Below, piece after piece: positions 1 to 64,000 of a stretch of 64,000 nucleotides of DNA. The DNA is from Macrostomum hystrix. Taxonomy: Eukaryota > Animalia > Platyhelminthes. The translations under genes and the position numbers were made by a program. The stretch covers positions 496,001 to 560,000 of the forward strand of contig CATNEN010000011.1 in the NCBI GenBank assembly GCA_950097015.1, written 5' to 3'. How positions within the stretch are numbered: position 1 is the first letter of the stretch; the number at the start of each line of letters is the position of its first letter. A model generated the notes under the pieces. The model was not told the DNA's origin, searched no databases, and was given only the letters and a program-made list of their open reading frames with translations.

Positions 1-598
1 GATTATGTTGTAGAGAGAAGCAAAAACCATGCTTAAAGGCTTTGACAGCTGCTTATTCCCATCGCATTAATCCTCGCACCGCTTTTCTGATAATTTATTT
101 AAAAATGCAAATGAGAGATGAGAAAAATCTGTTTTATTATTATTTTTTGACTGAGTTAAAATGACGCGGAAAATTGACAATGGAAAGATATTATTTTCGC
201 TTGCATCTGAACTGACGGCTTAAGGCTCTTCAGTTGAACTACACGATTTTATTTGAATTTAACTGATGGATTAAAGCGAGACGAATTGTAGAAAAAGAAA
301 ATCTGCATTTGATTGATTGTGATTCTATAGAGGCTGATTGGGACAGATTAGACTATTTCTTCTACAATATAAATGCTAATTTAGTTTGGTTTAGTTTAAA
401 TTTATTCATTGATTTTTGCCTGCTTAGCCTGATCTAATTGGTATTTGATTTTAGCGAGCCTCCATTCGTAGTAGTTTTTAACCTCTTTCGAACTTATCTA
501 GTCTAGTCCACAGTTATAGTAGCACTTTGGTTTCTTTGTGCTTGTGCTTGACATTCAAATTGCATAATAATAGGTGAAGGGACGCAGTGAAACATAGT

Positions 599-1275
599 AA
601 GATGCAAGGAGAGGTATTGAGATGCGGGGAGAGGTAGTGAGATGCAGGGAGGGGTAGTGAGATGCAGGGAGGGGTAGTGAGATGCAGGGAGAGGTAGTGA
701 GATGCGGGGAGAGGTAGTGAGATGCAGGGAGAGGTATTGAGATGCAGGGAGGGGTAGTGAGATGAAGTGAGAGGTAGTGAGATGCATGGAGAGGTATTGA
801 GATGCAGGGAGAGGTAGTGAGATGCAGGGAGAGGTAGTGAGATGCGGGGAGAGGTATGAGATGCAGGGAGAGGTAGTGAGATGCGGGGAGAGGTAGTGAG
901 ATGCAGGGAGGGGTAGTGAGATGCAGGGAGGGGTAGTGAGATGCAGGGAGAGGTAGTGAGATGCGGGGAGAGGTAGTGAGATGCAGGGAGAGGTATTGAG
1001 ATGCAGGGAGGGGTAGTGAGATGAAGTGAGAGGTAGTGAGATGCATGGAGAGGTATTGAGATGCAGGGAGAGGTAGTGAGATGCAGGGAGAGGTAGTGAG
1101 ATGCGGGGAGAGGTAGTGAGATGCAGGGAGAGGTAGTGAGATGCGGGGAGGGGTAGTGAGATGCAGGGAGGGGTAGTGAGATGCATGGAGAGGTATTGAG
1201 ATGCAGGGAGGGGTAGTGAGATGCAGGGAGGGGTAGTGAGATGAAGTGAGAGGTAGTGAGATGCAGGGAGAGATG
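599..1275. repeat. Minisatellite, 20-bp unit (GAGATGCAGGGAGAGGTAGT), about 33 copies, intronic
   Basis: Unit visible directly; it explains the repetitive HLTTSPCISLPLPASHY ORFs at 503-1536. Confidence 0.95.
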
Positions 1276-1371: not shown

Positions 1372-4300
1372 GTGAAAATCTCCACCCTGGAAATATCTCC
1401 GGACGCTCCCAGCTCCCAGCAGCAGCAGCGCCAGTACCTCCTGGCCTCCGGGCCGGGCAACGCGAACACTCGTCGCAGCCTCCAAGCGGCTCGAGTGATC
1501 TGGCAGGTGGGCTGCGGCTCCATCGATGCCAGGCATCTGAGAGCGCTGGAGAGGCTGGAGAGATTAGCCATCACTGGCGAGCTGACACCTGAGCCTGTGC
1601 TGCTGTGGTACGTTGCCGACCTTATCGAGCCGGAATCCACAGCCGCAGCCATGGATGCTGCCGGCTCTCTGTCAAGCAGCCGCCTACGCCGCAGTGCCTA
1701 CGCCTATCCCAAGCGCAGAGCAGACGCCTCCTTCTTGTCTGTCTACGCCTCCGATCAGCTCTCGTCGGCCGCTCTGATTGGCTCGCCTGGCGCGTCAGCG
1801 CCGGCGTCGTCGATGTCTTCAGGTTTGTCGTCGCCACCGTTGCCAACCGGGGACACGCCGGCGAGGCCGCCGCCACCGTCGGATAATTTGAAACCAATCA
1901 CTCTGCCTACTACTACAGCTTCTACTACTGTTAGTAGTACTACAGTCACTACCACACTGAAGCCAGCCACCACTGAGCCGGGTCTGCGCCAGATATTCCA
2001 GATGAGCGCAGAGCCCTACAGTTTCCCAGTTGGCGTCCTGACTCGCATTGTTCTAATGCCCAGTAGAGATACGGCGGCGGATTTGAAGAATTTGAAAACT
2101 GCCGTGGTCGGATGCGGACACAACAATGAATTGGGCGTCTTCGGGCGATACTATCCGGCCCAGATGGTGCTAGAGGGGCATCCCAGTGAGTGCTGAATCA
2201 TGGCTTCCATCTATTGAGATTTTTGTCCTCAAACGTTTATCATCAGGGAGTCTGTTTAGAAACAATATCGTTTATGCCTATAGGGAAACTTTTTACTTTA
2301 TCAGTGTATCAATCTAACGAATTTTCAGGAGCAATCCGTCGTGTAATTTTTCCGACAATAATCCTTAAGATATTCACATTTTACAGGACAGTCTTCAATG
2401 GTATTTTCTCCTGAACAGTGGTAGGATTATTTTTTATGATTTATGATGATCTATCTACAATCCATCGTATCTTCTATAATGATCATTTTATGATTAATCC
2501 ATCAGTTGTATCTTCTCAGTATCAATCCCTCAGGTGTATGTTTCTCAGTATCAATCCCTTAGTTGTATGTTTCTCAGTATTAATCCCCCCATGTGTATGT
2601 TTCTCAGTATCAATCCTCTCAGGTGTATCTTTTCAGTATCAATCCCCTCAGGTGTATCTTTTCAGTATCAATCCCCTCAGGTGTATCTTTTCAGTATCAA
2701 TCCCCTCAGGTGTATCTTTTCAGTAGCAATCCCTCAGGTGTATCTTTTCAGTAGCAATCCCTCAGGTGTATCTTTTCAGTATCAATCCCTCAGGTGTATG
2801 TTTCTCAGTATCAATCCCTTAGTTGTATGTTTCTCAGTATCAATCTCTTAGTTGTATGTTTCTCAGTATTAATCCCCCCATGTGTATGTTTCTCAGTATC
2901 AATCCCCTCAGGTGTATCTTCTCAGTATCAATCCCTTAGTTGTATGTTTCTCAGTATCAATCTCTTAGTTGCATGTTTCTCAGTATTAATCCCCCCATGT
3001 GTATGTTTCTCAGTATCAATCCCCTCAGGTGTATCTTCTCAGTATCAATCCCCTCAGGTGTATCTTTTCAGTATCAATCCCTCAGGTGTATCTTTTCAGT
3101 ATCAATCCCTCAGGTGTATCTTTTTAATATCAATCCCCTTAGGTGTATCTTCTCAGTATCAATGCCCTCAGGTGTATCTTTTCAGTATCAATCCCTCAGG
3201 TGTATCTTTTCAGTATCAATCCCCTCAGGTGTATGTTTCTCAGTATCAATCCCTTAGTTGTATGTTTCTCAGTATCAATCCCTTAGTTGTATGTTTCTCA
3301 GTATCAATCCCTTAGTTGTATGTTTCTCAGTATTAATCCCCCCATTTGTATGTTTCTCAGTATCAATCCCTCAGGTGTATCTTTTCAGTAGCAATCCCTC
3401 AGGTGTATCTTTTCAGTATCAATCCCCTCAGGTGTATCTTCTCAGCATCAATCCCTCAGGTGTATCTTTTCAGTATCAATCCCTCAGGTGTATATTTTCA
3501 GTAGCAATCCCTCAGGTGTATCTTTTCAGTATCAATCCCCTCAGGTGTATCTTTTCAGTATCAATCCCCTCAGGTGTATCTTCTCAGCATCAATCCCTCA
3601 GGTGTATCTTTTCAGTATAAATCCCTCAGGTGTGTCTTTTCAGTATCAATCCCTCAGGTGTATCTTTTCAGTAGCAATCCCTCAGGTGTATCTTTTCAGT
3701 ATCAATCCCCTCAGGTGTATCTTTTCAGTATCAATCCCCTCAGGTGTATCTTCTCAGTATCAATCCCTCAGGTGTATCTTTTCAGTATCAATCCCCTCAG
3801 GTGTATCTTCTCAGTATCAATCCCTCAGGTGTATCTTTTCAGTATAAATCCCCTCATGTGTCTATTTCTCATTAACAATCCCCTCACGTGTATCTTCTCA
3901 GTAACAATCCCTCAAAAACTCCACTGTAACAATCAATGAAATGTTTCAGCTGCCAAGGACATCGGCTCCCAGCACAAGTGCAGCCTCCACGTCACAGACA
4001 GCCGCGGCAAGCAGGACTTCTTCGGCTTCACTATTCGCGTGCCGGAGCCGGCGCCGCCCAAGCCGCTGCCAACCGCCAACGCCGACAATCGCCTATTCAG
4101 TTTGCTGCTTGGCGTTCGCTACAATCGTCAGTTAGATCCGGCTGCTTATTTTGCCAACGCTTTGGAGCACGATATTCGCCTGTGCGTTACGCCTCTGGCT
4201 GATCGTTGCGTCAGCTTTGCTCCAGACTCGCCTCTGCAATTCAATGCGGCTACCTGCCGAGTCTACGGCTTGGCCTGGCGCAGGAACCAGCTGACACAGG

Positions 4301-16928: not shown

Positions 16929-19900
16929 ATGTCCAATACTGGCAAAGTTTACGGAAAATGCTTCGAATGCGGCTGTATCTGTCACAACTGTTCTGATACT
17001 AAAGAGTGAGTCTTCCTGTGCGATAAATTCTTCCCGTCCTTCAGTTAGTCCCACCCCTTCTTCAGTTATTTCCAAAAATCCTTCAGTTAGTCCCACCCAT
17101 ACTTCAGTTAGTCCCACCGATTCTTCAGTTAGTCCCACCCCTTCTTCAGTTATTTCCAAAAATCCTTCAGTTAGTCCCACCCATCCTTCAGTTAGTCCCA
17201 CCCATCCTTCAGTTAGTCCCACCCATCCTTCAGTTAGTCCCACCCATCCTTCAGTTAGTCCCACCCCTTCTTCAGTTATTTCCAAAAATCCTTCAGTTAG
17301 TCCCACCGATTCTTCAGTTATTTCCAAAAATCCTTCAGTTAGTCCCACCAATCCTTCAGTTAGTCCCACCGATTCTTCAGTTAGTCCCACCCCTTCTTCA
17401 GTTATTTCCAAAAATCCTTCAGTTAGTCCCACCCATCCTTCAGTTAGTCCCACCCATCCTTCAGTTAGTCCCACCCATCCTTCAGTTAGTCCCACCCATC
17501 CTTCAGTTAGTCCCACCCATCCTTCAGTTAGTCCCACCCATCCTTCAGTTAGTCCCACCCCTTCTTCAGTTATTTCCAAAAATCCTTCAGTTAGTCCCAC
17601 CGATTCTTCAGTTATTTCCAAAAATCCTTCAGTTAGTCCCACCCATCCTTCAGTTAGTCCCACCGATTCTTCAGTTAGTCCCACCCCTTCTTCAGTTATT
17701 TCCAAAAATCCTTCAGTTAGTCCCACCCATCCTTCAGTTAGTCCCACCCATCCTTCAGTTAGTCCCACCCATCCTTCAGTTAGTCCCACCGATTCTTCAG
17801 TTAGTCCCACGCATTCTACAGTTATTTCCAAAAATCCTTCAGTTAGTCCCACCCATCCTTCAGTTAGTCCCCCCGATTCTTCAGTTAGTCCCACCAATTC
17901 TTCAGTTATTTCAACAAATCCTTCAGTTAGCCCAACCCATCCTTCAGTTAGTCCCACCCATTCTTCAGTTAGTCCCACCCATTCTTCAGTTAGTCCCACC
18001 CATCCTTCAGTTAGTCCCACCCATCCTTCAGTTAGTCCCACCGATTCTTCAGTTAGTCTCACCCATCCTTCAGTTAGTACCACCCATTCTTCAGTTAGTA
18101 CCACCCATTCTTCAGTTCCTCCATTCTTCAGTACATTCTTCAGTCCCACCCACCCTTCAGTTAGTCCCACCCGCCCTTCAGTTAGTCTCACCCATCCTTC
18201 AGTTAGTCCCACCGATTCTTCAGTTAGTCCCACCCATCCTTCAGTTAGTACCACCCATTCTTCAGTTCCTCCATTCTTCAGTACATTCTTCAGTACCACC
18301 ATTCTTCAGTCCCACCCACCCTTCAGTTAGTCCCATTCATTCTTCAGTTAGTCCCACCCATCCTTCAATTAGTCACACCCATCCTTCAGTTAGTCACACC
18401 CATCCTTCAGTTAGTCACACCCAGTCTTCAGTTAGTCACACCCATCCTTCAGTTAGTCACACCGATTCTTCAGTTAGTCACACCGATTCTTCAGTTAGTC
18501 CCACCGATTCTTCAGTTAGTCACACCCATCCTTCAGTTAGTCCCACCGATTCTTCATTTAGTCACACCCATCCTTCAGTTAGTCCCACCCATCCTTCAGT
18601 TAGTCCCACCGATTCTTCAGTTCCTCCATTCTTCAGTACATTCTTCAGTACCACCATTCTTCAGTCCCACCCACCCTTCAGTTAGTCCCACCCACCCTTC
18701 AGTTGGTCCCACCGATTCTTCAGTTAGTCACACCCATCCTTCAGTTAGTCCCACCTATCCTTCAGTTAGTCCCACCGATTCTTCAGTTCCTCCATTCTTC
18801 AGTACCACCATTCTTCAGTCCCACCCACCCTTCAGTTAGTCCCACCCACCCTTCAGTAAGTCCCACCGATTCTTCAGTTAGTCCCACCGATTCTTCAGTT
18901 AGTCCCACCCACCCTTCAGTTCGTCCCACCGATTCTTCAGTTAGTACCTCCCATTCTTCAGTTCCTCCATTCTTCAGTACATTCTTCAGTACCACCCACC
19001 CTTCAGTTAGTCCCATTCATTCTTCTGTTAGTCCCACCCATCCTTCAGTTAGTCCCACCCATCCTTCAGCCAGTCTCTCGTGCTTCTCCGCAGTCTGGAC
19101 TATCACCGCCAAATCGCTGAGCTGCAGAGCCGGCTGCGGGATCAGCGTCAGAGCCAGGCTCGAGTGGAGGCCGATCTGGCTAACGAGCGCGACTCGCGCA
19201 GAACAGAGTCTGAGCGGCAAACGGATGACATGGCCAGGCTGAGGGATCGCTACGATCGGCTGCTTGAGTCGCACAAGAAGCTCAGCAGAGTCAACGCCGG
19301 TCTGGAAGAGAAGCTGCTGGATTTGGCTGGCCGGTTCGACTCGGAGCAGAGGGCACTGCTGGACAGGCTGGCCAGCGCTGAAACTGGACTAGCTGAATCA
19401 GAGCAGACTGTTGAAAGGCTGAGAGCAGACCGGGAGAGATGCAAGACAGAGTGCGAGATTGCTGTCAGAATGCTCAGAGCCCGGCCTGAGGCTTTTGTGC
19501 CTGACGAAGAAGCCGACGGACTTGAAGAGGCCGCATTAACAGCTAGAAATCTGCATGTTAAGGTGTGCTCTCAACAAAAAAATCTAGGATTATAAGTCTG
19601 CTATTAAAGGATTATCCATGACACTATTTTATCACACAATTATAAGATCCCCATCTCACTATTTTCCCATCACATCTCACTCAACCATCTCTCACTATCG
19701 AAGACTGAACTTGAATCCGTTTCCATGGCAATCGAATTTCAGCCTCCATCAACGTCATCCTACGTGACGGTGCCACTGCCGACATTTCCGCCAACTTTCG
19801 CGCATTTCCCAGCCGCATCAGCGGGCAGTGCCCAGCAGCAGCAGCAGCAGGTGCCGATGCTGCATCGTGCGGCCAGCGTTGGTGACGCCAGAGCTCTGGT

Positions 19901-20915: not shown

Positions 20916-22300
20916 AATAATAACAACCGCGAGTATTAAAGACTAACGAAGAGAAGTGACATCGCAAGGAAATATAGTTGAACTTTCAATTTAACTATGC
21001 GATATCAGTAAGGGAAATAGACTCTCCAAAAGAGGAGAACGATCGATAAATAAAGTATTTCGCTCATCATGCCTAGGGCTGTCCAGGTCCACCAAGAAAA
21101 CTTGTAGTTATCTGCTTGGACAATTCTACAGCAAAAGTAAATCCTTTGAATAACTGCTCAGAGAATGTACTAACATATCAGGCTCAGTGCTCATGCATCG
21201 GCTTGCTCAGTGTTTGGTAAGATCTATGGAAACTATTAAAGTACATACATACTTTGCATTGGGTGGTGAGTGACAGATTGGTTGACAGACTAGGCGATAA
21301 TTTGTCCTGTGGTCGAGCTGCGCCTAATATTTTGGCTTGATCAGTGAAATTTGAGAAATTGGGTGTCCATAGTTCATATTTCCTAGTTCATTGTACATAC
21401 TGTAGTTCCACCTGTTGTAGTCCTTAAAGGTCCAGCAGTCCGTTTTCATAAAGGTAGGTGTCCACCGAAGCGGAGATGTTGCAGGCACATTCGGGTGACA
21501 TGCTGACAAATTTTGAAGGCCTTGGCAAGGCCGCACTGAGGCGCAGTGCTAATTTGTGTATAGGGGTGTATGAAATACACTAGCTCTTATGGGAAAAATC
21601 GGCCTTTGGCCAGAACCATAGAATATCTCGACGGTCCGAAGAGCTGGCGACTTGATTATTGTTTCAGAAGACGCGCAACAAAAATTTGGCCCTTGTTCTT
21701 GAGTTTCGAGTGCTTGCGTTGCTCCGTTCGTGTGCAGCACAGAAAATTGTCGAAGGGCGAAAATCCACCCTAGGTAGTTTTCATGGAATGGCGTTTCTAT
21801 CGTTTACCTAAACTCATATTAGACTGATTTCTTAGAAATGAGCTGTTGCTCAGAAATCATGTGCCAGTACTCGTATTAGAACTCAGAACTTTCAAATTCA
21901 ATGAATATGCATTTTGATATTCAAACATGAAAATGTTTTGCGCAATTCTCATTCCAGCCTACTAAAGAATGCTTTCTGAACAAATTTCTTTGCACATCTA
22001 GAAGCCAGTAAAAAATTACAAATTGAATTCGAGCATACTGAGAGCAGAGGCCTCCAAAGTGACAATTTTGTCGGACCTGAATGCCTGCTTGAAATTTGAC
22101 AAGTTTGGAATCGTTTGAAAGCGGAGAAATCTTTTCTTTTATTTAACTATATACATTTGTGAGTACGTTTAACTGCAGTGGTCAGATCACAATCAATTTT
22201 GGTAAGCCAAATAAGATTAATGCAGACCCTTATTCGTCTCTTGAAAAAAACCGAGGATATTCAACACTAAGACGTCAGGCCAGTCATCTTTCATCAACGC

Positions 22301-24370
22301 CAGGCCGCACACTGCCCACATGACAAAAGGCGGCGATTGAAGAAGTTCGGTCGGTCTTGGAGCATGCATGTGTGCTGCATTAGGGTGGCCCAGACCGCAC
22401 ACTGCCCACATGACAAAAGACGGCGATTGAAGAAGTTCGGTCGGTCTTGGAGCATGCATGTGTGCTGCATTAGGGTGGCCCAGACCGCACACTGCCCACA
22501 TGACAAAAGACGGCGATTGAAGAAGTTCGGTCGGTCTTGGAGCATGCATGTGTGCTGCATTAGGGTGGCCCAGGCCGCACACTGCCCACATGACAAAAGA
22601 CGGCGATTGAAGAAGTTCGGTCGGTCTTGGAGCATGCATGTGTGCTGCATTAGGGTGGCCCAGACCGCACACTGCCCACATGACAAAAGACGGCGATTGA
22701 AGAAGTTCGGTCGGTCTTGGAGCATGCATGTGTGCTGCATTAGGGTGGCCCAGGCCGCACACTGCCCACATGACAAAAGACGGCGATTGAAGAAGTTCGG
22801 TCGGTCTTGGAGCATGCATGTGTGCTGCATTAGGGTGGCCCAGGCCGCACACTGCCCACATGACAAAAGACGGCGATTGAAGAAGTTCGGTCGGTCTTGG
22901 AGCATGCATGTGTGCTGCATTAGGGTGGCCCAGACCGCACACTGCCCACATGACAAAAGACGGCGATTGAAGAAGTTCGGTCGGTCTTGGAGCATGCATG
23001 TGTGCTGCATTAGGGTGGCCCAGGCCGCACACTGCCCACATGACAAAAGACGGCGATTGAAGAAGTTCGGTCGGTCTTGGAGCATGCATGTGTGCTGCAT
23101 TAGGGTGGCCCAGACCGCACACTGCCCACATGACAAAAGGCGGCGATTGAAGAAGTTCGGTCGGTCTTGGAGCATGCATGTGTGCTGCATTAGGGTGGCC
23201 CAGACCGCACACTGCCCACATGACAAAAGACGGCGATTGAAGAAGTTCGGTCGGTCTTGGAGCATGCATGTGTGCTGCATTAGGGTGGCCCAGGCCGCAC
23301 ACTGCCCACATGACAAAAGACGGCGATTGAAGAAGTTCGGTCGGTCTTGGAGCATGCATGTGTGCTGCATTAGGGTGGCCCAGGCCGCACACTGCCCACA
23401 TGACAAAAGACGGCGATTGAAGAAGTTCGGTCGGTCTTGGAGCATGCATGTGTGCTGCATTAGGGTGGCCCAGACCGCACACTGCCCACATGACAAAAGA
23501 CGGCGATTGAAGAAGTTCGGTCGGTCTTGGAGCATGCATGTGTGCTGCATTAGGGTGGCCCAGACCGCACACTGCCCACATGACAAAAGACGGCGATTGA
23601 AGAAGTTCGGTCGGTCTTGGAGCATGCATGTGTGCTGCATTAGGGTGGCCCAGGCCGCACACTGCCCACATGACAAAAGACGGCGATTGAAGAAGTTCGG
23701 TCGGTCTTGGAGCATGCATGTGTGCTGCATTAGGGTGGCCCAGACCGCACACTGCCCACATGACAAAAGACGGCGATTGAAGAAGTTCGGTCGGTCTTGG
23801 AGCATGCATGTGTGCTGCATTAGGGTGGCCCAGACCGCACACTGCCCACATGACAAAAGACGGCGATTGAAGAAGTTCGGTCGGTCTTGGAGCATGCATG
23901 TGTGCTGCATTAGGGTGGCCCAGACCGCACACTGCCCACATGACAAAAGACGGCGATTGAAGAAGTTCGGTCGGTCTTGGAGCATGCATGTGTGCTGCAT
24001 TAGGGTGGCCCAGGCCGCACACTGCCCACATGACAAAAGACGGCGATTGAAGAAGTTCGGTCGGTCTTGGAGCATGCATGTGTGCTGCATTAGGGTGGCC
24101 CAGGCCGCACACTGCCCACATGACAAAAGACGGCGATTGAAGAAGTTCGGTCGGTCTTGGAGCATGCATGTGTGCTGCATTAGGGTGGCCCAGACCGCAC
24201 ACTGCCCACATGACAAAAGACGGCGATTGAAGAAGTTCGGTCGGTCTTGGAGCATGCATGTGTGCTGCATTAGGGTGGCCCAGGCCGCACACTGCCCACA
24301 TGACAAAAGACGGCGATTGAAGAAGTTCGGTCGGTCTTGGAGCATGCATGTGTGCTGCATTAGGGTGGCC
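22301..24370. repeat. Highly homogeneous tandem array, 90-bp unit x 23 copies
   Basis: 2070 bp = 23 x 90. Only two variable positions seen (CAGG/ACC and AAAGG/AC). Confidence 0.97.
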
Positions 24371-25599: not shown

Positions 25600-26445
25600 A
25601 TCAGGATCTGGGATGATGGAAGCCTAATCAGGGGATCTTGGATGATTAATCTGGGAATCTGGGATGATGGAAGCCTAGTCAGGGGATCTTGGATGATTAA
25701 TCTGGGGATCTGGGATGATGGAAGCCTAGTCAGGGGATCTTGGATGATTAATCTGGGAATCTGGGATGATGGAAGCCTAGTCAGGGGATCTTGGATGATT
25801 AATCTGGGGATCTGGGATGATGGAAGCCTAGTCAGGGGATCTTGGATGATTAATCTGGGGATCTGGGATGATGGAAGCCTAGTCAGGGGATCTTGGATGA
25901 TTAATCTGGGGATCTGGGATGATGGAAGCCTAGTCAGGGGATCTTGGATGATTAATCTGGGGATCTCAGATGATTGAAGCCTAATCAGGGGATCTTGGAT
26001 GATTAATCTGGGAATCTGGGATGATGGAAGCCTAGTCAGGGGATCTTGGATGATTAATCTGGGGATCTGGGATGATGGAAGCCTAGTCAGGGGATCTTGG
26101 ATGATTAATCTGGGGATCTGGGATGATGGAAGCCTAGTCAGGGGATCTTGGATGATTAATCTGGGGATCTGGGATGATGGAAGCCTAGTCAGGGGATCTT
26201 GGATGATTAATCTGGGGATCTGGGATGATGGAAGCCTAGTCAGGGGATCTTGGATGATTAATCTGGGGATCTGAGATGATGGAAGCCTAATCAGGGGATC
26301 TTGGATGATTAATCTGGGAATCTGGGATGATGAATGCCTAATCAGGGGATCTTGGATGATTAATCTGGGAATCTGGGATGATGAATGCCTAATCAGGGGA
26401 TCTTGGATGATTAATCTGGGAATCTGGGATGATGGATGCCTCATC
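25600..26445. repeat. Minisatellite, 51-bp unit, about 16 copies
   Basis: Unit GATTAATCTGGGGATCTGGGATGATGGAAGCCTAGTCAGGGGATCTTGGAT; gives a 17-aa periodic ORF. Confidence 0.95.
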
Positions 26446-37762: not shown

Positions 37763-40700
37763 ATGAGCAGTCTCGAATCATTTCCATGGCTTCTAACATT
37801 GAGACAAGCGGCTCCCTCAATTGGACAAAAATATTCTATATGCGACGATCGATTTTACCAGCAGCCATCGAAAATTTTAAATGTTACAACCCAAGAGATC
37901 CAAGATAGAGTGGCTTTGTACAGACAAAGGAGTACCGACTATCTAGAGGACATTATGGAGCCCTAGGCCTGACCAGTGCGCAAGCCATCACTATTATGTG
38001 CAGCCATTTTCCAAAGCATCATGCTGTGTCTGGCATTCTTCGACTCCTCTGGGAAAGGGGAGACTTTCCGAAGTACATTGTCATCTGTACTGTGAACATA
38101 AATGGGGCAGTTGTACGACTACAGGAGACGGGTCAGCACTCTTCTTTAACTGACTCTGCGACTGTTGTCAAGACTTCGCAGTGCCGCATTGTCTATGGCT
38201 TTACAGATGAAGGTCAGTTTACAAGTTACCTAATATTGCACTATCAAATGCACTAGAAGGCATGAACTGAATAGAATTAAGTAATAAATACTCGTAGTTA
38301 TAACATATTGCTCATCAACTCCATCCATTCACAGATATCGATCCAATGGATGAATCAAGGCAAGGAGCTGCCGGAATAACCACTTTCAATTCCAGCGGCT
38401 GCATAAAGACTAGCAACCTAGAAGAATTCAAGCGACTCGCTGAAACAGAGGCCAACAGCAGCGAAAAACCTGTGACAGTTCTGTTCCAGATGAGCGATAT
38501 AGCTGCCGAAAGAAAGAACGAGCAGAACCAGAAGATCTGTCGACTATTGACCGACTTATTACGACACGAGACGGTCTCTTCGACTTCTTGTGCCAGTCAT
38601 AGCAGACGAACTGCTCCAGGATGCAACATTTCTGCGAAGCACTTTACAAGTCGTGAAGCAAAACATTGAGAACAAGTACATAATTAACGACCAGCTATTG
38701 AAGTCCAGCTATGGCAATGGGAAAAGCCTCGCAAAGCTCATTCTCAGACAAACTGGCATCAGCTGGCTTCCTCAGCTCAAAGAATTCGTCTGCGCTCTGC
38801 GCAGCATCGATGCGTTCGCTCATTCCGCAGAGAACACTGAATACCTTCTGGAATGCGAAGTCACATTAGTGTTTCCCAGCCAGTCTCCGAAGGCTCTAGC
38901 TGTCGAGACCTTCTTAAAGCAGTTTGACATGCAACTCATGCTGCAAATGTTGGTTAGCAAGCTAACAATCTTGCACAAAGTTCTGCTGGCCAATGAGCAC
39001 AGAGATGACTTCAGATTCTCATGGCAAGTGGCCCATCTCGAGCTAGAGCACATCGACTACAAGTTTTGCTTGAAGAGGGACGGCAAGGCTGCTTTAAGTA
39101 GCATCGATACGTTTTTGACTCCCGCCATCGTGAAAGTCCAGGACGTGTCGGCAGACTGTGTCGAATTGGTCGCGCAGAGGCCAGCTGTTGAAAGCGCCGA
39201 GAATCCAGTGTTAGGAGTTCGAGTGACTTGGCGCAGCATCAATGAGATTGACTCTCGAGAACTTGAAAGCCTGTTCGGTGATGAGGAAATGACTGTGCTC
39301 AAGTTGAAGCAACTGACCGCCACTACAAAGTACATGATCAGCTTTTCCACGATTCGGGAGCTCGGAAATGGTGAAGTTGTTAATTTGGAGCCAGTTGAGA
39401 CGACTGAGAGCGATGCACCTATTATCACAGCTGCAATTGCAATTTCACCTTTCGCAATTATGGTCGAGATTCAGGAAGGCAAATACAGTTGTGGCTCAAA
39501 TCATACTGGTTACCAGGTCACCGTGACTGATGTCGAGTCGGGTGCGTTTGTCCGAAGCAGGTTCTGCAACCTGAACGAAGCAGCGGCCATTTCCATTGAT
39601 GGAAATGGTCGATACATTGTGAGAGCATCTGCAGTTTACTCTGACAATACAGCTGGCGAGCCCAGTGATGCTAAAAGCGTCAACGTTGAATACTCCGCAG
39701 TCGACGTGGCAAAGTACACTGCACTTCAATTTTCTGAAGCAGTCGACCCTCAAAGCATGCCCGCCGTGTATGAACTGCAAATGGAGCCCGCGATGATTGA
39801 TGCGCAGAACCAGGTGCGCAGAATGGAGTACAAAGGCTGCTCGGATTTACAAAGAGGTCCACAGTCTGAGGAAAAGGTGATCATGATCGTTGGCGAGACA
39901 GGTTCAGGAAAGACGACTCTCATCAACTCGATGGTAAACTACTTGTTCAGCGTTGCCTATGAAGACAACTTTAGGTTCCGTATTGTCGCTGACCCGAACG
40001 AGAAGGAGCTCAGCAGTCAGTGTCAGTCTGCCAGCCAGACCCAATGGGTCACGTCGTACACGTTCCACCGTCACGAAGGGTCGCGTCATCCGTTCACCTT
40101 CACACTGGTGGACACGCCCGGCTTTGGCGACACTGGCGGCATTGTCAACGATCAGAAGATTGTGGACAGGATCCGAGCGTTCTTCTCGTCCGCCAATGGT
40201 GTAGATCACCTGGACGCCGTTGGGTTTGTCGTGCCAGCCAGTGTCTCTCGCTTGACCCCGACACAGCGGTACGTGTTTGACTCCATCTTGTCGTTGTTTG
40301 GCCGTGACATTGGTGGAAACATCTACGTTCTCGTGACCTTTTCCGACGCTAACGAGCCGCCAGTTTTGGAGTCACTGAAGGAAGCGCAAATTCCCTACAA
40401 CCTGCACATTAAGTTCAACAATTCAGCTGTGTTCGCCAAGAAGTCTGATGGTAGCGGCGTAATTGGAAGTTTCAACAAGCTGTTCTGGGACATGGGCATG
40501 GACAGCTTCGCTGAGTTTTTCCGACACCTTCAGGGCATGGAATCCAAAAGCTTGACTCTGACTAAGGATGTCCTGCAGGAGCGCCAGCGCTTGCAGATAA
40601 AGCTTGTGGCAATAAAAAAAGACATCGATTTGAGTTTGGGAGTTCTCAACAGACTCGAAGAAGAGATCGAAGTTATCAAGAAGCACTCAGCAGACCTGAA

Positions 40701-41412
40701 GCGAAGTAAGGACTTTACCTACTGCGTGACGGAAGAGAAAGCTGTTCACGTGGAAATCCCTACAGGAACCTACATAACAAACTGTCTGAGTTGCAATAGG
40801 ACCTGCCACTACCCATGCAAGATTCCAGACGACAAAGATAAGGCCAGTTGTGCCGCCATGACCAATGGGAAATGCCATGTCTGTTCAGACGAATGCGACT
40901 GGTCTTTGCACCGCAACATGTCCTATAGAATTGAGATCCAAAGCGAGCGGGTGACAAAAACCTCACATGAGTTAAAAGCACGCTATAAAGACGCTCATGG
41001 TAAGATGTTGACAGCCAATGGTTTAGCTCAGCAGGTGTACAACGAATACCTTGCCAAAAAGTCTGGACTTGTTCAGCTAATTATAGATAGCAAAAAGTGC
41101 ATTGAAAGACTCAAAGAGATCGCTTTGAAGCCGGACCCGCTGAGCGAGGTGGACTACATTGACAAGCTGATTGAGTCGGAGCGAATGAACCGACGTCCCG
41201 GTTTTAACGATAGAATGCGACAGCTGCATGACATCAGAGAGCTAGCTGTTTGCACCGGCAATCTGCGAGACGACATCATTCTGAACAGCATAGTTGAGAA
41301 TGAGAAACGGGTGTACGACCGCTACCGAAAGTACCTGAAGAAGCCAATTGTTCAGCAGCTGGGAAATCAGTTCAGGCAAGCATATAATTGGGTTGCTCAG
41401 AAATTTCGCTGA
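37763..41412 (+). CDS. Large FN3 + septin/AIG1-like (TRAFAC) GTPase with Cys-rich motif and coiled coil. Exons 37763-38212 and 38335-41412; frameshifts near 37960 and 38580; intact 940-codon frame 38590-41412
   Basis: G1 GETGSGKTT, G3 DTPG, G4-like TFSD; two FN3-like segments; Cys-rich NCLSCNRTCHYPC...CHVC..ECDW. The intron 38213-38334 is GT-AG and phase-consistent. Confidence 0.8.
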
Positions 41413-49000: not shown

Positions 49001-52000
49001 CCTGGTGCGGCTGATTTGTCGGCGACTTTATTGGCGACGAGGAGGCGATGCTACTTTTTGAACGCTTTGATGGGGTCTGATGTGTGGCGGAATTTTCGAC
49101 ATTTTCAACAGAATGATCAAGCTCTGAAGACGATTCGGCAGCATCTTTGACGATTTTCGACGGCGACGCCGATGAGTGGTCGTCGATGAACTCGTCGAAG
49201 CTGATTTCTTCGATCTTCTGCGCTGCTTGTTTTGCCTTACGGCCCGGGCCGGGCTTTGCGGTCGTTGTCGGCGACTTCAAAGGCGACCTTTTTGGCACAA
49301 CAGCCATGCCATCATCGACATCGTCAGGCTCCTTCGAGTCTGTTTTCTTTACATCAATCTCCGGGCAACTGTCGTCGCCTGGCAACGTCAAAGGTTCGCG
49401 TTGCTCCTCGGTGTCGCCAGATGGAGTCGGCGATGATACTGCTGAAGATTTTGCTCGCTCATCGCTGACACTGCGCTGACGTTGGCGCTTGGCTGCTCGC
49501 TGACGCTTCTCCATGGTTTCGATGCGTTTTAGCATGGCCTGCATCCAACGCTCCTCGCGGTCCTAGTGTATGCGAGTAAACGGGTTAAATATACTCATCA
49601 AATTGTTAATCATAATTAGTATTATTACTACTATAAGTAGTAATGCCATTGTGCGAGTCTGTCATTCGCTTGTTGCGTTAAAAAAAAAAGCAACACCGAT
49701 TGGTAAAGACTCCCTGTCAATTTACTGTCGCTTTTGGTAAGAGCAAGAAAGACGACTGTAGATAGAAAACTTTCTTTGCTGTCTCTCTTGTAGTTTATAA
49801 CCATAAGCTAGTGTTCTACCGGCACCTCACTTGAGTTAAGTAAAATAATATTTTGTAAAAGTCTGTCATTCGCTTGTCGCCACAAAATATTCAAACAACA
49901 ACGATTGGTAGAGACTTTCTTAATCTAGCTTTGAATTAAAAAAGCCAGATGGAAAACAAACATTTTTAGAGTTTATTCTCCAAACTAATTAGGGCTTCTT
50001 CAAAGCATATAACTGTGTTTTTGCAATGAGCTTCGCAAAGCATATGTATCAATACATATCTTACCATATTGGAGACTCCTTGCTGCTGCTGTTGCTGATT
50101 ATTTGATGTCGAAGCAGCGTCAATAGTAGTGGCCTGATCCACTGATATGCTGCGAATATTGGCTGCCATCTGTGGGGATATTGCGATTAGATAGGTGATC
50201 AATAATCATAGCGCAATTATAGAAAAAGGCAATCAACCAGTCCGCACAAAATTATAAAAAAAACATTACTTACAGAAGCTTTCTTTCCACTCTTTTTAAC
50301 CTCCGGCTGAGAAATTTGTCTAGAATGCGTCTTGGTTGAAGCTGGCGAGTCGAATGAGATGCTGCGATTGGCCTTCTAATGAAAGACGAAAGGGAGTGTG
50401 TTCAGAGTAAAGTACATATAAGTACCAACAATTACCCGCCTATACTGGTACTAGATAATTTGTGGATAGCTACCTTCTGACAAACTGGTAGATTGCTACC
50501 CACTACTAACTGACCAACTGGTAGATAGCCACCTACTGAATAACTGGTAGATAGCCACCTACTGAATAACTGGTAGATAGCCACCTACTGAATAACTGGT
50601 AGATAGCCACCCACTGAATAACTGGTAGATAGCCACCTACTGAATAACTGGTAGATAGCCACCTACTGAATAACTGGTAGATAGCCACCTACTGAATAAC
50701 TGGTAGATAGCCACCTACTGAATAACTGGTAGATAGCCACCTACTGAATAACTGGTAGATAGCCACCTACTGAATAACTGGTAGATAGCCACCTACTGAA
50801 TAACTGGTAGATAGCCACCTACTGAATAACTGGTAGATAGCCACCTACTGAATAACTGGTAGATAGCCACCTACTGAATAACTGGTAGATAGCCACCTAC
50901 TGAATAACTGGTAGATAGCCACCTACTGAATAACTGGTAGATAGCCACCTACTGAATAACTGGTAGATAGCCACCTACTGAATAACTGGTAGATAGCCAC
51001 CTACTGAATAACTGGTAGATAGCCACCTACTGACCAACTGGTAGATAGCTACCCACTACTAACTGACCAACTGGTAGATAGCTACCCACTACTAACTGAC
51101 CAACTGGTAGATAGCTACCCACTACTAACTGACCAACTGGTAGATAGCTACCCACTACTAACTGACCAACTGGTAGATAGCTACCCACTACTAACTGACC
51201 AACTGGTAGATAGCTACCCACTACTAACTGACCAACTGGTAGATAGCTACCCATTGACCAAATGCAGAAGCAGATCCCAAAATAATGCAAAGTACCTGAC
51301 TCTTGCCAGTAGAAGCAGAAGCCGATCCGCCCGGCTTCTTAAAGCCAGAGGAGACAGTCGCATCGGATCGCTTTTTAATGGCTGATGCGTGAATGTCGCA
51401 GATCAGATCGTCAAACGCACCGCCAGTAGATGACGTAGCAGATGAAGACGACTGCCGTCTGCGCTGCTGCTTCAGCTCCTGCCGATGATGCTGAAGCGAC
51501 TGTTGCTGCTGCAACTCGTTGTCATTATCATCGCCACTGTCGACGCCGTCATTGATAGCGTCAGTGAATTCTGGCGCATTTTGTTGCAAGCGTTGAAAAA
51601 ACAGCCTAACTGGACAGCCGTGGGGAAGAGAACAGGCGCAGAGCACTGCAGTCTTGCGCAACTGATAGTCGAAATCGAACGGCAGAGTGATCTCAGCGCC
51701 TGGTCGCAGTCGTTCTGTGGCCACAAGAACCAAGTGCGGCCGGCCAGCTAGAACCATGTGCCTCACTGAACAATTCGGCCTACAGGATCGCCTGGCATAG
51801 CGCGCATCGTTGCCAAGGTTACTAGCGTCTATAGCAACCAGCGGCAGGCTGCCAATTTGAGCAATGCCGTCAGCTGACCAGCCCTCATCGAAGCCGTCAT
51901 AGTAAAGTACAAATCGGCTAGCAACAGAGCCCGGCGGCAACTCGTCCGGTAGGCAGACTCGGCCGCGGTATTCAATGATAGGCTCCCCAGGAGCCACACT

Positions 52001-57104: not shown

Positions 57105-57715
57105 TGCAGCTGGGACAGACGGAGGTCCCCTACTGTCAGGAAGTGAAATTTCTAGGTGTCCACCTTAACGCCAATCTCTGCTTGAATAAACACGCCGACA
57201 ACATGGCGAACACGTGCAGGGCCATTGTCATGTCCCTGTGCCGCATCGCCATGCAAGATCACCAATAAGCTTAGCAGCGTCACTCTCAGGATGCTGTACA
57301 GGGCCTATGGTGAGAGTGCTCTCACCTACGGCGCCCCAATCTTGACTCTGATCTGCGTCACCAACCAGATCAAGCTGCAAAAGATCCAGAACCTTGGTCT
57401 GCGCATCTGCTACGGTGTGTGCCTTCTACCTGCATGAGCACCGAATACCTTCACAAACTGGCCGGCATGCCAATGCTCTCAGGCAGAGTCAAGCAGCTCG
57501 GTATGGCCTGGCTGCTCAAGATGAGAGCAGCTCGCCTGCGCGGCTTCCACATCAAGCCGGAGCTGCCTCGCGCTCCGGGCCGAATTCCCATCCTCAATGT
57601 CCTCAATGGGGCGGGGACAAATCAACAGGCAGAACCCACTCCCAATCCAGGGCTGACCAGTCTCTGAGACCCATGGCCCTGAAAGTAAACTAAAATAAAA
57701 TTTAAATAGCTGCCT
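57105..57715 (+). mobile_element. 5'-truncated non-LTR retrotransposon (LINE) fragment, RT C-terminal region, frameshifted
   Basis: Translation EVKFLGVHLNANL...KHAD...LYRAYGESALTYGAP...KLQKIQNLGLR is typical of CR1/L2/Jockey-like RT thumb regions; ends in an A-rich tract. Confidence 0.8.
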
Positions 57716-58412: not shown

Positions 58413-60041
58413 CTCGCTATAAACCCCACTTTTTTAAAACTCGTTCGTCACAAATGGAAAAGTACTCTATTAGATCTTGATGTAACTCTTATTCGCCACT
58501 AATTGTTTCAAGCAGCGATGTTACTTATAACTTGGTCGGGTCGTTTAAAAAACCAAATTCGGTTTATAACCGGTTTATGAGCGGTTTATAAGCCCCTATG
58601 TTAAGTGATTTATACGAAATCAATCGCCGTTTTAAAATTCTGGTTGAGCACAACTATATACATGTAAAACGTATTTTTTATCACTTTCTGTTGCAAGATA
58701 AATTATTATACGTGTTGAGTATCACACTCAAGATGCAATAGGCCTACCCACGCAATGAGTATCATTGGGTGCGTTCGAGTAGCCAAACTGAATTAAACTG
58801 GGCCAGTTTAGATTTAGCAGAATAACAAGCAAATATACATTTGACACCACTGCTATCTCTATGCAACGAAATAGTAACATTTTAACTGTCAGTAACTGCC
58901 AGTTTATATATTATATTGCAGTTTAGCTATTTTAAATTTTGTTACATTTAAAACATTTATATTTCTATTTCCATTTAGCACATCTCATTTTCATTTCTAT
59001 CGTCGAATTTGCTGTAGTGTCAAGCGTTTGCCTATTTTGGTTTTGCCTATTAGGCCTACCCTAGGCCTATTCTTCAAGCTTCAATCAAAAGCCTATAGTG
59101 CACTTCTAATTCACTTCATATACAAACAGATAGCTATACACTTTATTCACTACTTTCTCAATACAACGCATTTCCACTTTTCCCAGTCAGAAAACGCAAG
59201 TTTTTTGTTTCCATCTAAATAGTTGTTGTACTACTGTGCAAGTGTTTTAAAATACGTTGGCAATTGTTGCAGATTAAATCAGACCATTTTTATAGCACCT
59301 GTGTTTCAATTGTCATAGCATCAAGCTTTAACTGAAAAGTTTGTAGGTGGTAAGTAGGGCCTATTAATAGTTTGAAGCTATTGCTTTAATCTAATCGAAA
59401 GTTGTAAAAGTTGTATATGTAATAGAATAAGTTGCAACTTTTGCTTCAATCTTATCATTTATTCTCTCCATTACCTTAACTGTTCTATTCTTATTGCCTT
59501 ACCTATTTAAGCTTAAGCTTTCATCTGCATAGTTGGTAGTAGCTAGGGCCTATTACTTCAATTGTCAATTAGACCATTTATCATAGCACTAGGCCTAGTG
59601 TTTCAAACAAAAAACATATTTTATACTTCTACAAATATAAATACTATATATATATAGTATTGTATCACTGTATATTGAATAATCTTTTTTGAGCAAAACT
59701 ATTTAAACTTTATGGATTGCTATGTTGCTATAGCACTTTTGTTGCCATATCTATAGGCCTATTATTACCACATGGGGCACTATAAACACATGCCAAGAGC
59801 AAGCTGCAGCTTGACATTGCCTATTCAGGCCTGCTACACCTCTCCTCATGCACTCAATTCTATTAACTACTGGGCATAGCTGAGCACTAGGTTTGTGCTG
59901 GCCAGGCCCTTCCCAGCCTTCATCTTCACAAGTGCTAGCTACCGCTAGTGGGACATGTTCTGGGCAGAATAGTGCACTCCTGAGCTGCTTCAACACCAGA
60001 GCAACACCAGGCACTGTGGCTCTTGACACCATTAACACTTA

Positions 60042-60684
60042 GGGTAATGTATCATCAACCGAACAGTGTATCTTCAAAACCGAACAAGAATTTTGACTCC
60101 TTCCTTGGTCTTGTGCAAGACAGAAACAAGCTATTGTATTTCACAGAACAACTATTTTAAATGTCAATGAAATTATTTACAAGCTAATGCATGACATGCA
60201 ATGAAGCATTAAAAGGAAAGAAAGATATGGATGTTTCAGTAGAAATTTTTATCACAAAGGCATACTTTTTTACAGCATTTTTTCAGCATGTACTTTAGAC
60301 TAAGATTGTATGTGGTTGCTTTCCAATTAAATTACCATAAATGTAGTTATTTATAGAGCATAAAAAATGCTTTCAAATGACATAATTCATGATAGATCAC
60401 TCCTTAAAATAAGATTAAACCACTCACTCAAATTTTAAAACCAAACATCAAATTCTCTGTTTGGTTTGAAGATACATGAAAATCATAGTTTGGTTTTAGA
60501 TGAAAATGTGAACAACTTTTTTCTATTTGACAAAATTGCAAAAGCAGATACTATTTAGAAAGACATGAAACAGTTTTCTATAACTTGGCTTTTGATTTAT
60601 CATGATATCTTAAATAGATAATCTGTAGCTTAGGTTTGAAGTTTAAAAAATGCATATTCTTGTTCGGTTGATGATACATTACCC
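60042..60684. mobile_element. Non-autonomous TIR DNA transposon (MITE), copy 2
   Basis: Same TIRs and TA flanks as copy 1, same orientation. Confidence 0.88.
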
Positions 60685-61262
60685 TATCTGGAACTTTTGC
60701 ATGCTGATATTTCTCACTCTATACCTGGCATGGTAATCAGAAAGCTCACACTGCATTGCACTGTTTAATGCCTTTACTAGATACCCATGTGGCTATTTTT
60801 GTTATTTTGGCTTTTTTGGTATAAAGTAGATACCCTGACTTTATACAGGTCAAGTTCCGGATTTCATCCGGTAGGAGATAGCAGTCCTGCATTGAAAATT
60901 CTGGACAAAAACGGGGCAAGTGTTTAAAACCCGAAATTTCGCCTCCCCGAAACCATTGGTCGTGATTTTAGATCGTGCTGGATCGCTGTAAGGGCGAGAC
61001 GGATGCGATTCAGATTGTTGTTCATTAATCAAAAAAAGGAAATTGAGCTTCTGCTTAAGAATGCTGTTTGGAGGGATCTCCCATATACTTAATTAGCTAT
61101 GTGATACAGGCTTATTTGAAAGTGTAGACGAGAAGTAGAAGTAAAATATTAAAGACACAGTATCCAGGTGCCATAAACCCCAAAACTATTTCATAGGACG
61201 GCGTCTCCTGCATATGCATTATACTTTTGATCTGATCAGATCTCGAGATAATAGTTCATGGG

Positions 61263-62236
61263 TCACCAATCGATCATGGAAGGGAGAAAATGTCTGCGAC
61301 TGCAGGCTAATTTGACATTGACATTTTTCCGATGAGAACAAAACATTTTTCCGTTGTAGCATAAGAGGGAAAAGCGGGAAATGGTCCATTGGCATTTGTT
61401 GGCCTTTTCAGACCCATTTAAAGGTCGTCTACGTCGCTTGCCCACCTTCATGTGCGAATAGGGCGCCTCGGGCGGAGTGTCAGGCATAGCGATTTTCCAG
61501 AAGTCCATGGTTCACCTTCGGCAAGTTGCAACGGTGTCGGCCGTGCTCCTGCAGTCTCCGTATTTTAGACTCGGGAGATAGGTTGGAGAACCAAGCCTCG
61601 CAGTCAGTGCAAGTGCGCGGCTCCAGCTCCTTCCGTTCCGCACGGCGGCGGACTGTGTGGACGAAGGCGTACGGCGGTTTTTTCCTGTCTGGAAGGCGGT
61701 TAAAAGCCTCCCTCGTGACAAGGGCTGCGGCAGCTAGTGGCGACGATGGGCGACTCGACGCCGCAGGGAGACCTGTAGCGGGCACAGTGCCACGAGGATC
61801 CTCGCCCACATGCTGCGTCGATTGAGCTAGCGGCGACGATGGGTAAGTCCACCCTACAAAAAGCTGCTCAGGGCCTTGGGTCTCAGAGCCCTCCTCGTCG
61901 TCGCTCAGCACGGCCTGACTGTCGGGCAGACGGCCCAAATATCCAGGGCCTTGGGTCTCAGAGCCCTCCTCGTCGTCGCTCAGCACGGCCTGACTGTCGG
62001 GCAGACGGCCCAAATATCCAGGGCCTTGGGTCTCAGAGCCCTCCTCGTCGTCGCTCAGCACGGCCTGACTGTCGGGCAGACGGCCCAAATATTCAGGGCC
62101 TTGGGTCTCAGAGCCCTCGTCGTCGCTGCACTGGGTCAGTTCCGTTAGAAACGACGTGGGCATAAGGTCGTCGAGTAGGTGAGCCTAGTCTATTTGTTGA
62201 TTGGAGGGGCCTCCATAATTGCCGTCCAATGTTGCG
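61263..62236 (-). pseudogene. CtIP/Sae2 (RBBP8) C-terminal-domain ORF, with one TAG (62187-62185) and one frameshift (about 61509)
   Basis: YAFVHTVRRRAERKELEPRTCTDCEAWFSNLSPESKIRRLQEHGRHRCNLPKV.. then, in another frame, MDFWKIAMPDTP. This matches the CtIP signature EVVRKKEERRKL.GHTCKECE.YY...SRHR......TPENFWEVGFPST. Confidence 0.8.
61869..62128 (-). repeat. 75-bp coding tandem repeat, about 3.4 copies (SDDEEGSETQGPGYLGRLPDSQAVL)
   Basis: Unit starts at 61869, 61944, 62019 and 62094. Confidence 0.93.
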
Positions 62237-62717
62237 CTGTAAACTTGTGAAAAGTGTTTCAATGTGTAAGTGAGTGAACCGAATAGTGAAGTGCATTGAT
62301 GCATTCATGAAATAATGACAGAAGTGAATACACTTTCGATCGCTAATTCTCAACATCGAATGTTTTATTTATTTTTTATTTTGTATTTTTCAGTAACGGA
62401 TAAACTCAAGCAGCAGAACAGCAAGTTTATAATAATTAAAAAGAGTAATTAAGATTCAACGTTGGAGAAACATGTACTTTATCACGTTGTCAGCGCTGGG
62501 TAACACGGGTCCTTCATAAAGCGGACACACTGCTCAAATCAAGGCGTCATAAACTCATATGCCCAAACTCTACTAGTACCTAGTCATTGAGTCCTTAAGT
62601 TCAAACTGAAAATTCTGAGTTCAAGCAAGTCGCACTGCCGGCAATGCCAAAAAATCATTATCTCGTACAGTATCGTTATCATCCTCGCACAACCGCACCA
62701 CGGAACCATTGGCAGTT

Positions 62718-64000
62718 TTATTGGAACCCCAGCTGTACATGCGGCAGCACAGCGATTTTAGTGCCCGACAATACGCATGCGCCGACTACATCACAAGCCG
62801 GCACACGCATTGTCCGATCGAAATTCGTGCTGCTGTCGAAGGGGTCCGCTAGAAGAGATTGCACATGAGCGAAAGTACAACCACGGTTCGCCGAAGTTGC
62901 AGGAACGGCGCACAGCGATTCCAGAGGGTCGACAAAGGCATCATCTACTGGCAGTATATGAAGCGTCAGCAGCACTTCTTGGCCCTCCTTGTCTATCGCG
63001 GCGACGTGGCCGAAAACAAAGGACCTGTCCTCGACAGACCACCAAACAGCGACGAAGCAGCTGCACAACTTCAAAGCGGCGTAGTTTTCCGCCGGTCGGA
63101 ACACCTCGATCGTCTGTCCAGACGGAATCGTGACTGCAGTCCAGCAATTCAAACTGTTTGTCGGGCGTCGTAAGACAACTTCGCCGCAAACTTCGGTTTC
63201 GAATTGCCTCCTGACACGCTGATCAGCGGCCAAATCACCGACCAGGAGACCCCGCATCTGGAGAGTCCCTAGCTCTCTCTCAACTGCTCCTACTAGTTCT
63301 ACATCGGTTCGTCGAGTTCCATGCAGGCGATCTCGCAATTTCTGGTGCATGGTCTCGAATAAACCTGTTGACAATTTGTGCACAGGTCCGGCCAACTGCG
63401 CACCAGTGAGCAAGTGACAGCACACGTGATGCGCGTTGTATGTCAACGCCCGTTCTGAGTACAAGCGAGACAGGTTGCTGTGGAAATGTCTTAATTACAC
63501 TTCCACGTGCCGCAGTTCACTTCTCGGTGCGCCCTCAAGACCCAGTTAGAAGACTGCAGACGACAGCAGCAGGAAGTGCTCGTAGTGGGCCTGAGGTAGA
63601 AATTCCTCGAGAATAATAGGGCCAACAGCAAGCAGCCACACTTCTAACTCGTGGCCACGGAGGTGACGAAGATCCTTCATGAGTCGCACGGCCTTGCGCT
63701 GGACACAGCTGGGCAGTTTTATTGACTGCAGTCGCAGCTGCACTTCGGGCAGGCTGGCATGCAGATCCGGGCAGTTGGTGTCGCCTCGGTCCGGTTTCTC
63801 AGCCCTGACTAGAAAGAGCTGGAAGACGATGTACCGAACGATCCCGCAACACACCACATGAAGATAGCACGATGGAGTGCCCCGCATAGAATCAAATCCG
63901 CAAAGTCGACTGAGAGGAGTGCATCCGCGCACTCCAAGAGTGTCTGTGCGAAAGTCGCGTCCGTTAAGCGCATGGTTGCGTGCCAAGGTGATGGTGTCGT
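62718..64000 (-). pseudogene. EnSpm/CACTA-type transposase, C-terminal part, two in-frame TAA stops (63548-63546, 63497-63495)
   Basis: Motifs GVRGCTPLSRL.GFD...P.CYLHVVCCG, ELEVWLL.VGP.IL, YEHFLLLS, and Y....TYNAHH..HL.....AGP....STGLFE resemble animal CMC-EnSpm transposases. Both ORFs share one frame. Confidence 0.85.

Follow-up and report, generated by a model that had tools for sequence, protein, structure and literature searches.

Transposons of the cut-and-paste type rely on their host to repair the breaks they make, and the pathway used decides whether the element is lost, is copied back, or leaves a scar. Some of them, such as En/Spm and PIF/Harbinger, encode a second protein beside the transposase (TnpA and ORF1, respectively), which binds element DNA or the transposase. 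Genes of host type are also found in such elements: CACTA-related elements take up fragments of genes and mobilize them (PMC6379663), and fungal DNA transposons, EnSpm and Plavaka included, carry captured genes for TET/JBP dioxygenases, which are thought to counter silencing (PMC12730594). The locus described here, from the flatworm Macrostomum hystrix, joins the remnant of a probable CACTA-type transposase to a gene for the C-terminal domain (the tail) of CtIP/Sae2, a cofactor that licenses the nuclease Mre11. It occupies positions 61263-64000 of a stretch of 64,000 nucleotides (assembly GCA_950097015.1, contig CATNEN010000011.1, positions 496,001 to 560,000 of the forward strand), referred to below as the window. 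By homology, the tail gene is derived from the last exon of the host CtIP gene, and it may belong to the element as cargo.

All features of the locus are on the minus strand. Read in that direction, from 64000 to 61263, piece A and piece B of the transposase remnant are followed by an AT-rich spacer and then by a GC-rich tail gene in two frames:

63546-64000, minus strand: transposase remnant, piece A; open reading frame (ORF) 63546-63986, with the frame open to 64000, where the window edge ends it
63495-63548, minus strand: interval between pieces A and B in which the frame shared by both meets TAA twice (63546-63548 and 63495-63497), as the same-frame translation shows
62718-63464, minus strand: transposase remnant, piece B, 248 amino acids (aa); resembles DUF4218 at 63324-63431 and ends in a natural stop at 62718
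62164-62717, minus strand: AT-rich spacer of 554 bp, 35-39% GC, from the transposase stop to the ATG of the tail gene
61480-62163, minus strand: first frame of the tail gene (227 aa), in which acidic SQ/TQ repeats and a linker precede FNRLP, VRRRAERK, CxxC and RHR
61869-62125, minus strand: in-frame tandem repeat inside the 227-aa ORF, 75 bp in 3.4 copies, 98% alike
61395-61704, minus strand: CtIP/Sae2 C-terminal domain, colinear with residues 373-477 of Macrostomum lignano CtIP across the frameshift
61509-61530, minus strand: interval of the single frameshift, from RHR to DFW; one surplus base fits at 61509
61263-61508, minus strand: second frame of the tail gene (81 aa), with DFW, MPDTPPE and GKRRRRPL, continuing for about 43 codons beyond the end of the M. 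lignano protein

An earlier note on this DNA had placed the tail gene about 480 bp downstream of a co-oriented transposase. The shared strand and the position directly downstream are as described there, while the gap measures 554 bp (62164-62717). The copy in the window is dead: the tail gene is frameshifted and the transposase carries two stops, and neither product could work as it stands.

That the tail is a true CtIP/Sae2 C-terminal domain is shown by several comparisons of sequence. With residues 120-227 of the first ORF as query, phmmer found 13 matches in a library of 1.84 billion representative proteins, the best at E-values of 3.1e-10 and 4.8e-10. PF08573 (SAE2) is above its curated cut-off in eight of the ten matches that were scanned, and several are full-length RBBP8-like proteins. 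A plant repeat protein (P0004) was an irrelevant match and was set aside. Bridged across the frameshift by an X, the tail scores 90.3 bits against our own profile of nine CtIP tails, from which the window and M. lignano sequences had been left out; the best of 2000 shuffles scores 10.9. In a protein atlas the tail is placed among SAE2 clusters (0.91, 208/256 features). Residues 154-213 of the first ORF align with residues 373-432 of M. lignano CtIP (52%, E 1e-17), and residues 2-38 of the second with residues 441-477 (51%, E 5e-9). Since both frames match a single protein colinearly, the domain is whole, though split once. A word-indexed protein search with the tail gave no match. A chance likeness of a short string of motifs to CtIP could draw on the Pfam result for the unbridged first frame, which falls below threshold (13.2 bits, E 0.2, cut-off 19.8, profile positions 1-35), the second frame having no Pfam match by itself. 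This explanation is refuted, however, by an E-value of 3e-10 in a library of that size, by colinear matches on both sides of the frameshift, and by a score of 90 bits against 11 for shuffled sequences. The C-terminal signature that the earlier note had recognized by its motifs is thus genuine. A CtIP-tail pseudogene is also present on a Logan contig from another organism (L002, 524-900). Its FW motif has a stop codon in place of the W; past this stop the KRRR-x-PL patch can still be recognized without a change of frame. The sequence upstream has no similarity to the transposase of the window.

Within the tail, the motifs follow the CxxC, RHR, F-W, P-x-T order of the SAE2/CtIP family, the last two in the next frame. 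The first frame has FNRLP followed by VRRRAERK (61630-61653), CTDC (61600-61611) and RHR (61531-61539); the second has DFW (61497-61505) and MPDTPPE (61467-61487), which form a block with GKRRRRPL at 61419-61505. VRRRAERK, CxxC, RHR and FW were all listed earlier as parts of one compact ORF. They are all present, but because the RHR-side and DFW-side motifs sit in different frames, the compact ORF is in fact two ORFs separated by one frameshift. The shift is read from the letters of the contig near 61509-61530 and may be an assembly error. An intron in its place was considered and rejected, as there is no usable acceptor ahead of FW. Apart from the one frameshift, the gene reads through about 300 codons without a stop. 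In an alignment of tails, the T-P/S-P site for cyclin-dependent kinase (CDK) that precedes FW in other species (human T847, yeast S267) is absent from the window tail and from M. lignano CtIP, and after FW these two have T-P, vs T-Q in most animals. As the host CtIP of M. lignano has the same pattern, the altered phosphosites of the window copy are inherited and not new.

The 153 residues before the tail are acidic repeats only, with the spacer and then the transposase remnant upstream of them; the N-terminal coiled coil is absent, as had been noted earlier. In the tandem repeat, DSQ and an acidic SETQ recur with every 25-aa unit. The 227-aa ORF has nine S/T-Q sites up to residue 117, and four Ser-Glu-Thr motifs. 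The linker of the tail gene holds a second internal duplication (61732-61759 and 61825-61852; 28 nt, 82% alike, 93 nt apart), in which PSSPLA occurs twice. There is a weak hint of transcription: three runs from an RNA-restricted search (run type unconfirmed) contain 28-50% of the words sampled from the tail gene and 12-30% of those sampled from a 6-kb stretch.

The nearest named relative of the tail gene is BOX15_Mlig004387g1 of M. lignano (P0014), at about 50% identity. This species has two near-identical genes, BOX15_Mlig004387g1 and g2 (P0014 and P0002), each with three exons and an N-terminal coiled coil. On two contigs they are flanked by an acetyl-CoA-synthetase (ACS) gene and an EMP24 gene, with no transposase near, and by their sequence and setting they are ordinary host CtIP genes. 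In a tree of eleven tails, the window tail is sister to M. lignano CtIP (87/88) within a clade of three (98/96), and both branches are long. The similarity of the window gene is confined to the last-exon region. All the motifs of the M. lignano tail are retained in the window at about 50% overall identity: F/Y-N-x-LP, VRRR..R, C-x-D-C-E-A-W-F, LSPES, GRHR, F-W/F, MP-x-TP and GKRR-x-RPL. Both proteins also have an acidic SET motif 64-66 residues upstream of the tail. Because the spacings from this motif to F/Y-N-x-LP agree (66 residues in the window, 64 in M. lignano), the match spans the host last exon, although in the linker between the two motifs all similarity to M. lignano has been lost.

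A six-frame comparison of the 23-kb CtIP locus of M. lignano with the whole window finds the tail alone in common; exons 1-2, ACS and EMP24 have no counterpart there. With nothing but the tail shared, the window gene is not the host locus as known from M. lignano. The start of the first ORF was tried as a homologue of host exon 2 and rejected, as the match is too weak (E 0.14) and the order differs. At the DNA level, a comparison with 46 kb of M. lignano sequence found no similarity to the window. Compared with the host gene, the window gene has a single exon, is without exons 1-2 and the coiled coil, and has the SET/SQ unit amplified 3.4-fold. It is frameshifted, and it stands beside a transposase remnant outside the ACS-CtIP-EMP24 neighbourhood. 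By its sequence it goes back to the last exon of host CtIP, from which it has diverged. The earlier note had set its proposal against the simpler view that the segment is just the last exon of the host RBBP8 gene; derivation from that region is borne out, but about half of the residues differ from M. lignano CtIP.

The upstream ORFs are probably the remnant of a CACTA-type transposase, as judged from several weak resemblances. In piece B, residues 12-47 match positions 38-73 of the Pfam DUF4218 profile (E 0.055, 13.8 bits, cut-off 27), while piece A has no Pfam match. The named neighbours of piece A in the protein atlas, which are leads only, are Transposase_21 (0.90), Plavaka (0.89) and DUF4218 (0.85). 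The first atlas matches of piece B, at 0.97, are unnamed eukaryotic clusters; for the top one, the model is similar to Transposase_21, DUF4218 and Plavaka proteins. Judged by eye, pieces A and B also contain what look like the TNP2-type motifs of plant CACTA elements. A word-indexed protein search with piece B found no homologue. The catalytic domain, of the Transposase_21-type DDE class, would fall beyond base 64000. An intron that would remove both TAA codons was looked for, with splice sites checked by eye, and none of the GT-AG intervals whose length is a multiple of three does so; because no such frame-keeping intron exists, the transposase of this copy is considered dead. What had been called a CACTA transposase is thus a CACTA-like remnant in two ORFs with two TAA stops, tentatively identified by a DUF4218 match at E 0.055 and by atlas leads.

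The element itself is not delimited in the window. An element end had been suggested at 60833, and nothing marks this site, neither repeats nor subterminal arrays. CACT[AG] sites are numerous downstream of the tail gene, and none of them is marked by repeats. No subterminal arrays, GTGACC arrays or third gene occur downstream of the tail gene in the window, and the partner end of the element would lie outside it. Adjacency by itself cannot separate cargo from neighbour.

Our preferred reading, to which we give a probability of about 0.4, is that the locus is a decayed member of the CACTA superfamily, and that the family to which it belongs carries a CtIP gene derived from the host last exon, the product of which acts on the host Mre11-Rad50-Nbs1 complex (MRN) to suit the element. 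The tail gene would then be cargo retained by the element, a second gene downstream of the transposase, made from the last-exon region of host CtIP. It would have kept the acidic SET/SQ-TQ segment, tandemly amplified, and the whole Sae2 domain with its CxxC, RHR, FW, P-x-TP and basic KRRRRPL patch, while losing the coiled coil. The product of an intact copy would dock on host MRN and then switch on or redirect cutting by Mre11 at the breaks made by the transposase, and repair outcomes that suit the element would be favoured in this way. A role in the repair of the element's own breaks is a plausible conjecture. The stronger claim is rather unlikely: that an animal cut-and-paste family encodes a working MRN cofactor, a tail-only CtIP with multiplied docking motifs for Nbs1 or ATM, that raises transposition or survival.

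Some of these steps have counterparts in the literature on CtIP and its relatives. Ctp1 uses pSXpT motifs to bind the FHA domain of Nbs1, for which a Ser-Glu-Thr peptide from human CtIP has a Kd of 12 uM (PMC8079451). The part of Ctp1 that contacts Rad50 is modelled as the last 17 residues, which nearly coincide with a 15-aa C-terminal peptide (10.1101/2023.03.25.534200). Given this work on Nbs1 FHA binding and Rad50 contacts, a tail-only protein could in principle dock on MRN and start cutting without a coiled coil. A C-terminal peptide of the kind just mentioned reportedly stimulates the Mre11 endonuclease, to go by the title of a 2021 paper. In the window copy the frameshift comes just before FW/P-x-TP, and its product is without the segment that aligns to the Rad50-contacting part modelled in Ctp1.

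The rationale of the earlier note was one of hairpins: Sae2 with Mre11 was said to open those left by Ac excision in yeast, and CACTA excision to leave similar ones. For yeast, this needs correcting. In the Ac/Ds assay no revertants were obtained without Mre11 or Sae2, but a direct role at hairpins was inseparable from their role in end joining, and Pso2 was behind >95% of the recovered revertants (PMC3299998). For CACTA elements, no source stating that excision leaves hairpins was found in the literature, which makes the hairpin rationale a guess.

Several observations weigh against the preferred reading. The transposase family assignment is under every curated threshold. There is no second copy in the window by self-BLAST; the protein collections searched contain no close relatives of either the transposase remnant or the tail gene; look-ups of the exact products of the window ORFs returned no record; and no element ends or target-site duplication were found within the window. 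If the capture is recent, earlier selection on the host gene could account for all of the conserved motifs. In a genome so rich in minisatellites, the 75-bp repeat may be just another neutral one. The CDK site before FW is needed for activation of MRN in yeast and human, and is absent here. The N-terminal coiled coil makes CtIP a tetramer, and full CtIP function in cells requires this tetramerising N-terminus, which is missing as well.

These points leave room for other explanations, of which a neutral passenger is the most substantial, though on balance it seems somewhat unlikely. Here the last exon of host CtIP would have been captured by an accident of the Pack-CACTA or Pack-MULE kind and would be decaying without service to the element. 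The known habit of CACTA-related elements of picking up gene fragments fits this well, as do the restriction of the match to the last-exon region, the frameshift with about 43 codons read beyond the host stop, and a 75-bp array that resembles the minisatellites across the window. Mere decay is harder to reconcile with a frame of some 300 codons interrupted by one frameshift and no stop, and with retention of every host-tail motif at about 50% identity when similarity in the linker is gone. Such a combination points to purifying selection somewhere, possibly in the host before capture. The Pack elements so far described are, moreover, without a transposase, whereas one adjoins the gene here. 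It is improbable that the gene serves the element as an inhibitor, by which a tail-only CtIP would occupy Rad50/MRN or the Nbs1 FHA domain, block host CtIP and damp resection, so that repair of the excision site is pushed to end joining or damage signalling is blunted. The missing coiled coil and the absent CDK site would suit such a protein, the amplified SET/SQ-TQ motifs could act as decoys for Nbs1 or ATM, and short motifs binding to the same Rad50 surface are described as inhibiting MRN at telomeres (10.1101/2023.03.25.534200). The CDK site, however, is missing in the host CtIP of M. lignano too, and its absence is therefore not special to the element.

More improbable still is that the gene is not cargo at all, being instead the last exon of the host CtIP gene, or a dispersed duplicate of it, with an unrelated transposon fragment upstream in an intron or spacer. 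The ends of both gene and element are undefined in the window, upstream exons could fall beyond base 64000, nothing but the last exon is matched, and adjacency fits a neighbour as well as it fits cargo. On the other hand, a host gene would be put out of action by a frameshift within an essential domain, unless the shift is an error of the assembly; only about 50% of the residues are identical to M. lignano CtIP; and no EMP24-like neighbour occurs in the 61 kb downstream, vs 5 kb away in M. lignano.

The remainder of the window contains several further features. Between the tail gene and a GC-rich island (59750-60040) there is a unit of 647 bp (60040-60686) resembling a miniature inverted-repeat transposable element. 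This unit is unrelated to the locus; its terminal inverted repeats are 26 nt long, perfect and start with TAGGGTAATG, and there are other inverted repeats inside it. A GC-rich segment on the plus strand (57225-57693) reads, by eye, like the C-terminal part of a reverse transcriptase of the LINE (long interspersed nuclear element) type, and has no Pfam match. Also on the plus strand is a single ORF of 940 aa (38590-41412), in which residues 431-596 are a GTPase P-loop region of the AIG1/septin type. Minisatellites crowd the window (595-1272, 2496-3914, 17033-19069, 22300-24370, 25604-26441, 50509-51253 and others), examples being 90 bp x 23 at 99% and 21 bp x 97. Most of the long ORFs listed for the window lie in these arrays and are repeat artefacts, open in several frames and on both strands. 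The M. lignano loci used here (L001 and L004) are likewise rich in minisatellites.

CACTA elements with captured host genes are already known, and what appears to be new, from the homology described above, is the capture of a cofactor for processing the ends of double-strand breaks (DSBs). The pairing is taken as new because searches of the literature gave no report of a transposon-borne CtIP/Sae2, nor of a CACTA/EnSpm element paired with one. To our knowledge, no other eukaryotic transposon supplies a factor of its own for the processing of DSB ends. If the preferred reading is true, an element with a derivative of the Mre11-licensing cofactor would be a natural experiment in the steering of repair pathways, and its product would be a minimal, tail-only CtIP with which to ask what the C-terminal domain does without tetramerisation. 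Should the gene be merely a passenger, it would still be a clean animal case of whole-domain capture by a CACTA-type element. The window copy contributes a decayed instance and the comparison with the host genes of M. lignano, and no proof of function.

Compared with the second proteins TnpA and ORF1 of En/Spm and PIF/Harbinger, the window gene would encode something of a different kind, a homologue of a host repair cofactor without known DNA-sequence specificity. The Pack-CACTA and other Pack-type transposons of plants are similar in that a CACTA-related element holds a fragment of a host gene (PMC6379663). Those elements are non-autonomous and usually contain non-functional, mixed fragments, whereas a whole domain with its own ORF is found here, in an animal. 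Pack-CACTA elements are defined as having no transposase gene; at this locus the tail gene comes directly after a co-oriented transposase remnant. The fungal transposons with TET/JBP genes (PMC12730594) differ in the kingdom of their host and in the process concerned, which is DNA demethylation against silencing in the fungi and would be the processing of DSB ends in Macrostomum. In other respects they offer a parallel: in each case an element of the CACTA/EnSpm-Mirage-Chapaev-Transib group appears to carry a captured gene of host type as its second ORF, and the captured gene is believed to turn a host pathway to the element's advantage, a benefit that we infer here much as it was inferred there.

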